From Glycera tridactyla (taxonomy: Eukaryota): a stretch of 64,000 nt of DNA. The notes under the pieces were generated by a model. It saw only the letters and a list, made by a program, of their open reading frames with translations. It made no database searches and was not told the DNA's origin. Position 1 is the first letter of the stretch, and every line of letters starts with the position of its first letter. Location of the stretch: assembly GCA_965644265.1 (NCBI GenBank), contig OZ286468.1, positions 70,866,001-70,930,000 on the forward strand, written 5' to 3'. Below, piece after piece: positions 1,935 through 62,221 of the stretch. The position numbers and the translations under genes were made by a program.

Positions 1935-2017
1935 CTTTTATTCACTTTTTTCCATTTCCATCTTTTGTAGGTGAGTTGCAGTGTGGATTTCAACACATTC
2001 ACAGTTCTCAGATAAGT
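1935..2017 (+). other. Candidate recursive splice site (zero-length exon) with downstream AT pseudo-donor
   Basis: A ~30-nt pyrimidine tract (ttttattcacttttttccatttccatcttttg) leads to TAG(1968-1970)|GTGAGT(1971-1976). CAG|ATAAGT follows with +1 at 2012 (41 nt spacing). Confidence 0.75.
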
Positions 2018-15397: not shown

Positions 15398-15462
15398 GCT
15401 TGCTGCTTGTTTTCACCCCAGGTAAGGTTTATAAAAACTGCCTTGCCAGTTAGCAGATAAGA
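15398..15462 (+). other. Candidate recursive splice site with downstream AT pseudo-donor
   Basis: gcttgctgcttgttttcacccCAG(15419-15421)|GTAAGG, then CAG|ATAAGA with +1 at 15457 (35 nt spacing). Confidence 0.6.
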
Positions 15463-19441: not shown

Positions 19442-19530
19442 CTGATCAATTATTGTGTATTTTATGGTTTCAGGTGAGTGTCGTTTTTGCATCTTAGCTG
19501 GTTGTTTTATGCATCATCAAGCAGATAAGT
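19442..19530 (+). other. Candidate recursive splice site with downstream AT pseudo-donor
   Basis: Branch-like CTGAT (19442-19446) and T-rich tract, then tttCAG(19471-19473)|GTGAGT. CAG|ATAAGT follows with +1 at 19525 (51 nt spacing). Confidence 0.75.
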
Positions 19531-19564
19531 CAAGATACAATATTTACATATATATATATATATA

Positions 19565-19740
19565 CAGTCAAACCTGTATTCAGCAACCACCCTTGGGACA
19601 GTGAAAAGTGGTTGCTTAAGATAGGTGATTGTCTAATACAGGTTAATCATAGTGAGAAATACTCTGGAGGGATTTTCGAAAGTGGTTGCTTAAGGCAGGT
19701 GATTGCTTGATACAGGTGCCCTTTATAGCAGGTTCAACTA
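19565..19740. mobile_element. pogo-like MITE inserted in a (TA)n run
   Basis: (TA)n-CAGTCAAACCTGTATTCAGCAACCAC...two copies of gtggttgcttaagRYaggtgattgYYtRatacagg...GCAGGTTCAACTA-ta. Confidence 0.8.
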
Positions 19741-37702: not shown

Positions 37703-37798
37703 CTGACCCATTTTGATTTACAATGTTTTCCTATATTTTCAGGTGAGTGAAACTCCCTCATATGTCAACAGAGAGAAAAAGTTTGTGTGCAGATGAGT
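37703..37798 (+). other. Candidate recursive splice site with downstream AT pseudo-donor
   Basis: Branch-like CTGAC (37703-37707), then tgttttcctatattttCAG(37740-37742)|GTGAGT. CAG|ATGAGT follows with +1 at 37793 (50 nt spacing). Confidence 0.75.
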
Positions 37799-37813
37799 GA
37801 GAATATTTTTTTG

Positions 37814-51533: not shown

Positions 51534-53510
51534 TATGCCATCAATAGGATAGTCAGATGTTTGTGACATGTCATGTGTAGAGGTGTGTCAACTGCTTCCA
51601 CTTTATGACCTCTCTCGGTCCTCCTCATCTTGTGTCCAGGGTGTGTGACAGTGATATGATGTCCGCAGTGGACAGAACCTTTCATAGATCAGAAATACAC
51701 TGGCATACTTATTTCTTTGGATTGGTACATGCTGTCGGACATCAACCAACCAATCATCTAGATGAAGTTGAAATGGGAAGTTTCCTCATTTAGTCAGGTG
51801 ATTTCTCATAAATATCCAACCATTAAAGATGATGATTACATCATGAGCTATCAGAATGCTGCACATGACTATCAACCCTCCTTAGCAGGCACCCCTGGCC
51901 TTCAGGATGCCAGTCCCTCCCAAGGCAGGGATGGACTGGTTGATTGAGCCTCTGAAGCAGCCGTTGCCCATCTGCTCATGGTGTTCATTGTGAATCATAA
52001 GGAAACAGGTCATGTGACCTCATATGGACATCAACTGTTGGTTGATGGGATGACTGCCCAACAGATCACATAAATGTATACAATAGAGATGGAGATTTGC
52101 TGTCTGCAACCTAAACACAGATGGCATTGTTTAGGACTGTGTTTATGCTTCCACAACAGCCCAGTCGCCAAAAGTGACTCCTGTATGTCTCTCACACCCC
52201 AGATGTCACTCTTGTGGTCTTCCAGGTCACATGACATTTCTTCGTTATGGGTGTAGAGGGCATGTCCAAGGTTTCACACCACTTGATATCATTCAGTTGA
52301 TCAAATCATTCCCCCCTGTTCATGAGTTGCTAGTTGCTCAGTGTCTGCTCAGAAGTTTTCAAAATTTGAACAACCTAACATACTGGTGGTGAAAAGTATG
52401 TAACATGACCCATGTGGTCTTTGTCTTCTATAATAATAAAATGCTATTCAGTTTGTATTGCCATCCTTCCCATGCATTCTTGTATGATACAAATTGACAC
52501 TAAGACTGATGATAATTGTGAGACGATGTTCAGGGTGACGTCAGATTGCCATGACGTGTTTTAAGAAACTAAGTTGCTGAATTGGCTAGCTCTTGACCAC
52601 AAAATGTGTGCACACGTGATCCCATATTTTTCTCTCAAGTTTGCAGAAGTATGCTTCTTAGGCAAGCAGAATATGCCATATTGTGAATTTTGTTGTAGAA
52701 ATTTCATCATAGAAAAAATAACCAAGAATGTACTTGGTATTATGGCATACTTTGGGTTGAAAAAAGAATGTTTGAATTCTGAAATCGGCAAGCAAGCTAT
52801 TCAGCAGCTCTCTCCAGCCCAATGTTGTTCATTCATCAGAACTCAAGGTGTTGGACCTGGGATCTGTCATGTTTCCAAGGAGACCCCTCCTGTTCTAGTT
52901 GTGTGCCATTGTTATGACAACATGTGCCCTGGACATGGACAGCCATGTGTATTGTGATCACATGTTTTGAGGATGGGTTATTTCAAAACAGGTTTCTGAA
53001 TTTGTTTTAATTATTCTGGCAGATTAAAAAAAAAGACAATATTCTAAACTCTCCAGTATGAATTGATGGATGTTTTTTGGAAGTTCCTCCGAGTGGAGTG
53101 AATAGCCAACATGTATTTTACCTCCATTATTGTGGTTGTTGCTGACAAAGGGATGTTGTTGGACGAATAACCCGCAATATTGGAAATGAACAATACACCA
53201 CAAATGCTGTGCAAACTCTCTCTGGTGTATATTCATTCAACTACAAAATGGGATGAATGAACGTTTCTTTTCCACAACCAGGGTGCTACTTCTAACCAGT
53301 AGCTTTCTTATAAGAGATATCACCCTGGTTGTGGAAAAGGAATGTTCATTTAATGACGATTCTAACCTTATCAAACTTTCCACAGATAGAAAATATAATG
53401 TTTGTGACATACTCTCATTTATTCCTCTTTCAAAGTATAGGATATATATTTCAGGAGCTTCTCATTGGTTTCTTGCTCTGATGAATAGAATAATTGTCCG
53501 CAAGTTGAAG

Positions 53511-54419
53511 TTAAAGGGCTTACCCTACAGTGAGTTTCTCAGAGTACGTAGAATCTGTAGCACCAACCGAGACTTTTTCAGGAATATTGCCATGCTGAGT
53601 GCCCACTTTATCAGGAGGGGATACCCCCTCCAAATTCTGGAGGAGGCTTTTGAGAAAACCAAAATGGTCAACAGAGATGATCTACTTAGCACTGAGCTAC
53701 CAACACCCACCCAGGGCCCCACCCAACCCAATACATCAGAGAACGATGCAACACTGAACACAGAGAAATTTTTCTCCATCATCACTTACAATCCCAGAGG
53801 CAACCCCAACCAGTCAGTCATCAGGGAAAACTGGAACATTCTGGGAACATCACAATCAACCTGGGACATTTACAACCACCAGGTAATACATGGGTATAGG
53901 CGGCCCAAGAACCTGAGAGACTTGCTTGTCCATTCTCGACTAAAGAAACCAGGTAAGCTTACCATACCAGGTCTATCAGGCAAAACCAGTCATGAATGCA
54001 CACAATCTCAGTGCAGGTACTGCCCTAAACTAAACACTACAGGTACAATCACGTCACCTGTCACAGGCCTAAAATCTAAGTGCTGCACTAACTACACTTG
54101 TGAGAGCAGCAATCTCATCTACTGCCTCCTTTGCAGACACTGTTCGAAACTCTATGTGGGACAGACCAAACGCAGGCTCAAAGAAAGAATGTGTGAGCAC
54201 TTTCGCTCAATTAACAAGAAGATTATCACAACCCCCATGGGCCAACACTTTTCTACCCCTGGCCACCCAGGCCTGGACACCTTGGAAATCTTTGTCTTGA
54301 AATTTATCAAAGCAAATCCGGATTCCCAAACCGCCCAAAAACTTCGGGATCACCATGAACTCAGATGGATCCACAGACTCAGATCAGCATTACCATTTGG
54401 CCTTAACAGCATGGACTAA
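53511..54419 (+). CDS. Open C-terminal part of the PLE ORF (thumb, linker, GIY-YIG endonuclease)
   Basis: Uninterrupted reading frame from LKGLPYSEF to stop at 54417-54419. The upstream part of the listed 388-aa ORF (53253-53505) looks like fortuitously open flanking DNA. Confidence 0.85.
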   Translation, partial: LKGLPYSEFLRVRRICSTNRDFFRNIAMLSAHFIRRGYPLQILEEAFEKTKMVNRDDLLSTELPTPTQGPTQPNTSENDATLNTEKFFSIITYNPRGNPNQSVIRENWNILGTSQSTWDIYNHQVIHGYRRPKNLRDLLVHSRLKKPGKLTIPGLSGKTSHECTQSQCRYCPKLNTTGTITSPVTGLKSKCCTNYTCESSNLIYCLLCRHCSKLYVGQTKRRLKERMCEHFRSINKKIITTPMGQHFSTPGHPGLDTLEIFVLKFIKANPDSQTAQKLRDHHELRWIHRLRSALPFGLNSMD

Positions 54420-62115: not shown

Positions 62116-62221
62116 CACAATGCCGCAACATGCTAGGAATGCAGTCGTATGAAATACCAGATAGCGCCATCACAGCAAGTTCATCCTATGACATGGAGAG
62201 TGTGGGTCCTTCTAATGCAAG
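62116..62221 (+). CDS. DDR: Internal coding exon of a discoidin domain receptor (DDR)-like receptor tyrosine kinase, N-terminal part of the discoidin/F5/8C domain
   Basis: Acceptor ...tcttcctgtgtttgttcacag| at 62115 and donor |gtaagg at 62222. The phase-1 start reads xQCRNMLGMQSYEIPDSAITASSSYDMESVGPSNAR and ends in phase 2 within the Arg codon. This matches the DDR motif C..LGM...IPDS.ITASSS....GP..AR and, from recollection, the phase1/phase2 ~103-nt exon of vertebrate DDR1/DDR2. No other DDR exon was found in the window. Confidence 0.85.

Follow-up and report, generated by a model that had tools for sequence, protein, structure and literature searches.

A candidate recursive-splicing cassette, closed by an apparently splice-dead U1 site, in the putative giant 5' intron of a Glycera tridactyla DDR gene

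Positions 1935 to 2017 of the DNA studied here are likely to be a working recursive-splicing cassette, lying in the giant 5' intron of a DDR gene on the + strand. By "the window" we mean the whole stretch of DNA that was analysed, which is 64,000 nt of contig C28 of Glycera tridactyla (C28:70866001-70930000, + strand), an animal with a genome of 2.04 Gb. Our reading is based on the anatomy of the site, on a chain of like sites, on genome-wide enrichment of the class, on its specificity for distance and for the base at position +1 of the second motif, on the identity of the DDR gene, and on a parallel in the DDR paralogs.

We call this site cassette 1, and we mark splice junctions within motifs with a slash. 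Its parts are as follows:

1935-1967, + strand: polypyrimidine tract of 33 nt, of which 28 (85%) are C or T
1940 (TTTTAT) and 1944 (TTCAC), + strand: candidate branch-point A, at distances of 30 and 26 nt upstream of the AG, suggested by the yUnAy consensus only
1968-1976, + strand: ratchet point TAG/GTGAGT, a 3' splice site fused to a consensus 5' splice site (TAG at 1968-1970, GTGAGT at 1971-1976, junction at 1970/1971)
1971-2011, + strand: putative cryptic RS-exon of 41 nt, a length within the genome-wide range of 34 to 64 nt that is enriched for A at +1
2009-2017, + strand: putative splice-dead 5' splice-site mimic CAG/ATAAGT, the complement of the U1 5' end except for the A at +1 (CAG at 2009-2011, ATAAGT at 2012-2017)

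A 3' splice site is joined directly to a GTRAGT motif at 1970/1971, and the sequence leading into this junction reads cttttattcacttttttccatttccatcttttg tag/GTGAGT. A previous reading from the sequence only had noticed a pyrimidine tract leading to TAG/GTGAGT, with CAG/ATAAGT 41 nt later, and its coordinates proved to be exact (junctions 1970/1971 and 2011/2012). It had also singled out the pyrimidine tract as the longest; we find that cassette 1 has the most pyrimidine-rich 30 nt before any AG/GTRAG in the window (0.83 versus 0.70 for the next). The strict ratchet-point pattern YYYYNYAGGTRAGT has one match in the window, compared to 0.03 expected from shuffled sequences. Two details are atypical: the site has TAG rather than the commoner CAG, and it has G at -4.

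Classical ratchet points are followed by a canonical GT donor 40 to 80 nt downstream, and this is absent from cassette 1. Its closing site, CAG/ATAAGT, starts with AT instead of GT, so it does not provide a usable canonical 5' splice site. Because the closing donor has A at +1, which we will write as A(+1), and because it is the A form that is enriched across the genome and not the G form, we consider cassette 1 to be a variant rather than a plain ratchet point.

We also considered whether cassette 1 might be part of a repeat or a transposon, and we rejected this. At the sensitivity of our search, positions 1783 to 2169 are single copy in the genome, and dispersed repeats are found only at the flanks (1700-1782 and 2170-2240). 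There is no notable inverted or direct repeat across the site, and the spacers of different cassettes are unrelated. One of the dispersed repeats, which starts with AGTCAAACCTGTAT and has many copies in the genome, lies at 2176-2190, about 160 nt after cassette 1. It occurs again at 19567-19582, about 45 nt past the dead donor of another cassette (the one at 19473, described below); its proximity to both cassettes is probably a coincidence. A run of 151 N, which is either an assembly gap or masked sequence, lies at about 18.5 to 18.8 kb of the window.

Cassette 1 belongs to a chain of like sites. We scanned both strands of the window and of the 200 kb upstream of it (264 kb in all) for strong sites, defined as YAG/GTGAGT motifs whose 20 upstream nt are at least 65% pyrimidine. 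The + strand contains eight strong sites, versus 0.47 per strand expected when these 264 kb are modeled as a first-order Markov chain. The maximum across 60 Markov simulations was 3, and the Poisson probability of 8 is about 4e-8. The strong sites, along with one weaker cassette, are listed here by the last base before the junction or by the junction itself, with negative positions upstream of the window:

-130155 (L015:9845), + strand: strong site, without a clean A(+1) site
-110839 (L017:9161), + strand: strong site, then AAG/TTAAGT
-97286 (L019:2714), + strand: strong site, then CAG/ATAAGT
-72267 (L021:7733), + strand: strong site, then CAG/ATAAAC; without a clean A(+1) site
-51092 (L023:8908), + strand: strong site, without a clean A(+1) site
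1970 (in the window), + strand: strong site of cassette 1, then CAG/ATAAGT
15421/15422, + strand: weaker cassette (15400-15461) with pyrimidine tract, CAG/GTAAGG, 35-nt segment, CAG/ATAAGA
19473/19474, + strand: strong site, cassette 19451-19533, with pyrimidine tract, CAG/GTGAGT, 51-nt segment, CAG/ATAAGTCA; its second motif is CAG/ATAAGT
37742/37743, + strand: strong site, cassette 37720-37801, with pyrimidine tract, CAG/GTGAGT, 50-nt segment, CAG/ATGAGT

The second motifs after 15421, 37742, -72267, -110839, -97286, 1970, and 19473 all lie 35 to 52 nt past the junction. AGATRAG is found 10 to 65 nt downstream of four of the eight strong sites, versus 0.017 expected. The - strand of the 264 kb has three weaker sites, none of them with AGATRAG downstream. 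Similarly, the + strand has four CAGATAAGT words, three of which follow a strong ratchet point, and the - strand has three, none of which does. The cassettes are not copies of a repeat, as their spacers vary in length and show no relation to one another in sequence.

Several sites that would divide an intron into pieces of roughly 10 to 30 kb are present, as at known ratchet points. The successive distances between the eight strong sites are 19.3, 13.6, 25.0, 21.2, 53.1, 17.5, and 18.3 kb, and the last site is 24.4 kb from the discoidin exon described below; thus, the spacing is 13.6 to 25.0 kb with one gap of 53 kb, from -51092 to 1970. This gap could hide weaker ratchet points or recent insertions, or it could hold the end of another gene and a proximal DDR promoter. 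When the 264 kb are divided into 27 bins of 10 kb, 24 of these have a negative AT skew (T exceeds A on the + strand). The skew has no baseline and shows no boundary; it is consistent with + strand transcription throughout, though not decisive.

Since at least eight cassettes lie on the + strand, from 130 kb upstream to 37.7 kb inside the window, the transcription unit would start well upstream. We think it quite probable that + strand transcription begins before the window. That a + strand unit is already active by about 2 kb had been suggested before, and at the sequence level the suggestion holds up: sites of this type continue for at least 130 kb upstream, and on the + strand only.

The gene that the chain leads to was identified from two exons, which were searched singly and not as an assembled spliced model:

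62116-62221 of the window (C28:70928118), + strand: first discoidin-domain exon, entered in phase 1 after ttgttcacag/ and ending with AAG/GTAAGG
C28:70980721-70981242, + strand: DDR-specific DS-like exon (PF21114, 216 bits, all 177 positions), a single exon 51 kb past the window

The 34 amino acids encoded by the first of these resemble the start of the discoidin domain of neuropilins, DDR1, DDR2, and factor VIII (E values of 1e-4 to 0.2), a match that gives only the type of domain (F5/8 type C discoidin) and fits neuropilins as well as DDRs. The DS-like exon is the DDR-specific one. Cassette 1 and both of these exons are on the + strand, and the discoidin exon is presumed to be the final acceptor of the recursively spliced intron.

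Contig C28 has four DDR-like loci, which we found via their discoidin and DS-like exons:

First discoidin exon at 3079174, DS-like domain at 3171148-3172578, + strand: DS-like domain in three pieces, one of them with a TAG
First discoidin exon at 12430398, DS-like domain at 12358061-12358588, - strand: DS-like domain in a single exon
First discoidin exon at 58507763, DS-like domain at 58554646-58555167, + strand: DS-like domain in a single exon
First discoidin exon at 70928118, DS-like domain at 70980721-70981242, + strand: the locus of this window, DS-like domain in a single exon

The locus at 12.43 Mb, on the - strand, has seven cassettes on its own strand (12457984-12764148), which are 27 to 334 kb upstream of the first discoidin exon. 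The locus at 3.08 Mb, on the + strand, has two same-strand cassettes, at 2.835 and 2.947 Mb, which are 244 and 132 kb upstream of its first discoidin exon. By chance, about 0.02 cassettes would be expected in such an interval, given about 230 pattern matches on the two strands of 2 Gb. Same-strand cassettes are therefore found far upstream in at least three of the four DDR-like loci. Because this arrangement recurs in the paralogs, the cassettes are likely to be within the DDR genes' own 5' introns. The sequence-only reading had expected more than 60 kb of 5' intron in a DDR-like gene. With a DDR gene downstream on the + strand and two paralogs arranged alike, the sequences bear this out, and if the chain corresponds to one intron, that intron is probably about 190 kb or more, which is above the earlier 60 kb.

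We then consider where the gene might begin. An upstream search for a signal-peptide first exon required an ATG, a hydrophobic core, and a phase-1 GTRAG donor; apart from two microsatellite artefacts, it returned a single weak candidate, at -184460 to -184376. CpG-rich spots were mostly young transposons or a tandem repeat. The long open reading frames that we scanned in the 264 kb included no cellular gene: they were piggyBac, Penelope-like, or LINE sequences or had no match in Pfam, and short exons are undetectable in such a scan.

Some of the elements in this region can be described individually. An intact piggyBac-type transposase of 545 amino acids (PF13843, E = 4e-80) is encoded at L026:383-2017 on the + strand, 29.6 to 28.0 kb upstream of the window; the insertion lies in the presumed intron and is CpG rich, and thus probably young. 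Two Penelope-like elements are on the + strand: the one at 53253-54419 of the window has a 388-amino-acid reading frame with a GIY-YIG domain, and the one at L011:4417-6699, 175 kb upstream, has a 761-amino-acid reading frame with reverse transcriptase and GIY-YIG. At L025:4300-6600, about 35.7 to 33.4 kb upstream of the window, some 2.3 kb of tandem low-complexity sequence has a GC content of about 0.59 and a CpG observed/expected ratio of about 1.7, versus a regional median of 0.30, and the GC skew of its 10-kb bin is -0.30.

These results bear on whether cassette 1 might be functional in some other + strand transcript, such as an upstream neighboring gene, a read-through transcript, or a lncRNA, or might be used only from a distal alternative promoter of the DDR gene, with the main transcription start downstream of 1970. 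Such an arrangement would fit with the signal-peptide scan, which did not locate the first exon, and with the interruption of the chain, for 53 kb, shortly before the window. However, the chain keeps to one strand until 24 kb before the discoidin exon, the open reading frames described above give no other cellular gene to which it might belong, and in two DDR paralogs a like chain immediately precedes the first discoidin exon. Overall, we consider another transcript or a distal promoter to be unlikely.

To see how the class is distributed across the genome, we counted matches to AGGTGAGT, then a gap, then CAG-N-TAAGT, where the second word is CAGATAAGT if N is A; the reversed pattern was the control:

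A at +1, gap of 25 to 55 nt: 110 matches versus 31 in the control, nearly all of them unique sequences
T at +1, gap of 25 to 55 nt: 14 matches versus 24 in the control
G at +1, gap of 25 to 55 nt: 107 matches versus 213 in the control, mostly (GGTA)n-type satellites, with about 30 unique
A at +1, gap of 1 to 24 nt: 37 matches versus 32 in the control
A at +1, gap of 56 to 86 nt: 73 matches versus 39 in the control, about 55 of them copies of one transposon family

Given the results for the other gaps, the enrichment of A(+1) is specific to 25 to 55 nt after GTGAGT, which corresponds to a segment of about 34 to 64 nt. A is favored at +1 over T by about 8-fold (binomial P of about 1e-19), and it is also favored over G, the live form. 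Among the 75 A(+1) matches that were listed, nearly all have a clear polypyrimidine tract and YAG in the 15 upstream bases. A degenerate pattern, TYYAG/GTRAGT-N20-50-AG/ATRAGT, had 179 matches versus 53 for its control. The class must be larger than this count, because cassette 1 itself (tgTAG) falls outside the degenerate pattern. When the A(+1) and degenerate patterns are taken together, the matches form clusters on one strand, including seven on the + strand of C28 at 28.49 to 28.83 Mb (340 kb) and seven on the - strand of C28 at 12.46 to 12.76 Mb. Thus, what had been read as a recursive-splicing cassette in a single window belongs to a class that is enriched, constrained in distance, and clustered by strand.

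Another contig contains two near-identical duplicate cassettes that are 32 kb apart (C17:70906150-70906222 and C17:70937831-70937903, - strand). The pair has kept both splice motifs and has several base differences in the tract and the spacer, which is a small hint, from within the genome, of constraint.

The genome-wide counts also help to evaluate two other explanations. First, the cassettes might bind the splicing machinery without any stepwise removal of the intron, either as decoy exons that regulate intron retention or as A(+1) U1 telescripting marks against premature polyadenylation. Decoy exons are reportedly known from long introns, and telescripting would need sites that are complementary to U1 and unspliceable. 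However, A(+1) is enriched only at 25 to 55 nt after a perfect AG/GTGAGT with a polypyrimidine tract, no part of the motif is stronger than the regenerated donor GTGAGT, which is the signature of ratchet points, and the sites are 13 to 25 kb apart, as in flies. We therefore think that decoys or telescripting marks are an improbable explanation.

Second, cassette 1 might have no function, its splice-like motifs having come together by chance. In a genome of 2 Gb, about a thousand chance matches to the stricter AG/GT pattern are expected (0.03 per 64 kb), and even the reversed-pattern control gave 31 pairs genome-wide. But all three elements of cassette 1 are present at their typical spacing, on the strand of the gene, and inside a chain of like sites, and locally only about 0.02 sites with the A(+1) motif would be expected per 264 kb. 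An accident of sequence seems quite improbable.

What might bind the closing site? In this genome, U1 snRNA genes are arrayed in tandem in at least 42 copies (C4:77045576-77171102, L029-L040), which are all on the - strand, about 2.1 kb apart, and identical in score. The 5' end of U1, as read in one copy of the array, is the canonical ATACTTACCTG. We infer that CAG/AUAAGU pairs with this U1 at -3 to -1 and at +2 to +6, and that +1, where C meets A (C·A), is the only mismatched position. We also looked for a variant U1 with a C8-to-U change, which would pair perfectly with AUAAGU; one genome pattern did not find any, and the 42 scored U1 genes had the same score. In other systems, 5' splice sites with a G1A change can go through the first catalytic step, so by "dead" we mean that the site is unable to finish splicing, and not that it is necessarily inert.

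That CAG/AUAAGU is instead a live donor, by A-to-I editing to GU or as a U2-type AT-AC 5' splice site, and that the 41-nt segment is an alternative micro-exon, is very improbable: although introns of the AT-AC type that use the major spliceosome begin with ATAAGT, and although editing can create splice sites, a live donor should have led to enrichment of the GT form, which is not seen; no variant U1 that matches AU was found with the pattern used; the A(+1) sites are tightly coupled to ratchet points, which speaks indirectly against a U2-type AT-AC site; the A is preceded by G, the 5' neighbor that ADAR favors least; and a role for editing or structure is disfavored because the four cassettes that we folded have no RNA structure beyond that of shuffled controls (z-scores of -0.81 to +0.59).

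Returning to the recursive-splicing reading of cassette 1, its use in RNA, the binding of U1, and the order of the steps can be proposed from these features. First, U2AF and U2 would recognize the branch point, the pyrimidine tract, and the TAG (1935-1970). Second, U1 snRNP would dock on CAG/AUAAGU, 41 nt downstream, pairing everywhere but at +1; this docking would define a short exon and so would solve the steric problem of a zero-length exon. Third, the upstream exon would be joined to 1971, which would regenerate a 5' splice site made up of the end of that exon and GUGAGU. The regenerated donor would then be used toward 19473, then toward 37742, and finally toward the discoidin exon at 62116. 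Fourth, the closing site would be unable to complete splicing, and because it has A instead of G at +1, the 41-nt segment would never be kept in the mRNA.

More broadly, the genome may contain a whole system of this kind, with several hundred ratchet points whose RS-exon is closed by an A(+1) docking site for U1 and faces no competing live donor. Exons would be defined by U1 without any possibility of inclusion, a risk that flies and vertebrates have to control through competition between donors. The DDR family (at least three of the four paralogs) would in this way remove 5' introns with lengths from 190 kb to over 330 kb. We consider the arguments for and against this wider proposal to be evenly balanced.

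Recursive splicing has been documented mainly in flies and vertebrates. The cassettes resemble the ratchet points of Drosophila in that a polypyrimidine tract precedes YAG/GTRAGT, multiple sites would share one very long intron, in a gene with a developmental or neuronal role, and a cryptic exon of about 50 nt would be recognized and then skipped (Burnette 2005; Duff 2015; Joseph 2018, 2021, PMC8605326; Pai 2018, PMC6110457). In flies, the cryptic RS-exon of about 50 nt is closed by a functional donor, its skipping depends on the regenerated donor being stronger, and mutating the donor of the ratchet point forces the cryptic exon into the mRNA (PMC8605326). Strong 5' splice-site motifs are enriched after recursive sites, and exon definition has been discussed in this context (Pai et al. 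2018, PMC6110457). The closing donor in flies is a canonical and usable GT, so that two donors compete, whereas the closing site in Glycera has A(+1), with 110 matches versus about 30 non-satellite matches for G. Inclusion of the cryptic exon should therefore be impossible by design in Glycera. The regenerated donor also differs: it is mostly GTGAGT in Glycera and GTAAGT in flies.

The RS-exons of vertebrates share exon definition, a 5' splice site that is regenerated at the start of the segment, and a location in the long introns of long genes (Sibley 2015; Blazquez 2018, PMC6224609). However, vertebrate RS-exons have functional donors, and many of them are annotated and included under the control of the exon junction complex. 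The cassettes of Glycera appear to be wholly intronic and to have a 3' border that cannot be spliced.

A third group of known elements, the splicing-incompetent U1 sites, includes the pseudo-5' splice sites of the Drosophila P element, the U1 sites of telescripting, and mutant G1A donors that recruit U1. Like the closing site of cassette 1, these are complementary to the U1 5' end at nearly every position without being productive donors, and they can recruit U1 and influence their neighbors. Unlike them, the A(+1) sites are in a fixed partnership, 25 to 55 nt downstream of ratchet points, which is undescribed in the literature that we searched. In a full-text literature search, no account came up of ratchet points being regularly paired with an A(+1) site; the coverage of the search was incomplete, and novelty is not proven. 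As far as that search goes, cassette 1 would act like a ratchet point and RS-exon that lack the canonical downstream donor, a design that appears to be undescribed in flies or vertebrates.

For annotation, chains of cassettes could reveal, from the DNA sequence by itself, how far giant transcription units extend and on which strand they lie. In this locus, the chain would put more than 130 kb between the start of the DDR gene and its first recognizable coding exon. In flies and vertebrates the cryptic exon is a liability, as weakening the donor of the ratchet point brings the exon into the mRNA. If our reading is correct, a splice-dead U1 site would be a simple and testable answer to this danger, and Glycera would provide natural evidence that the binding of U1, without a usable donor, suffices to define an exon.
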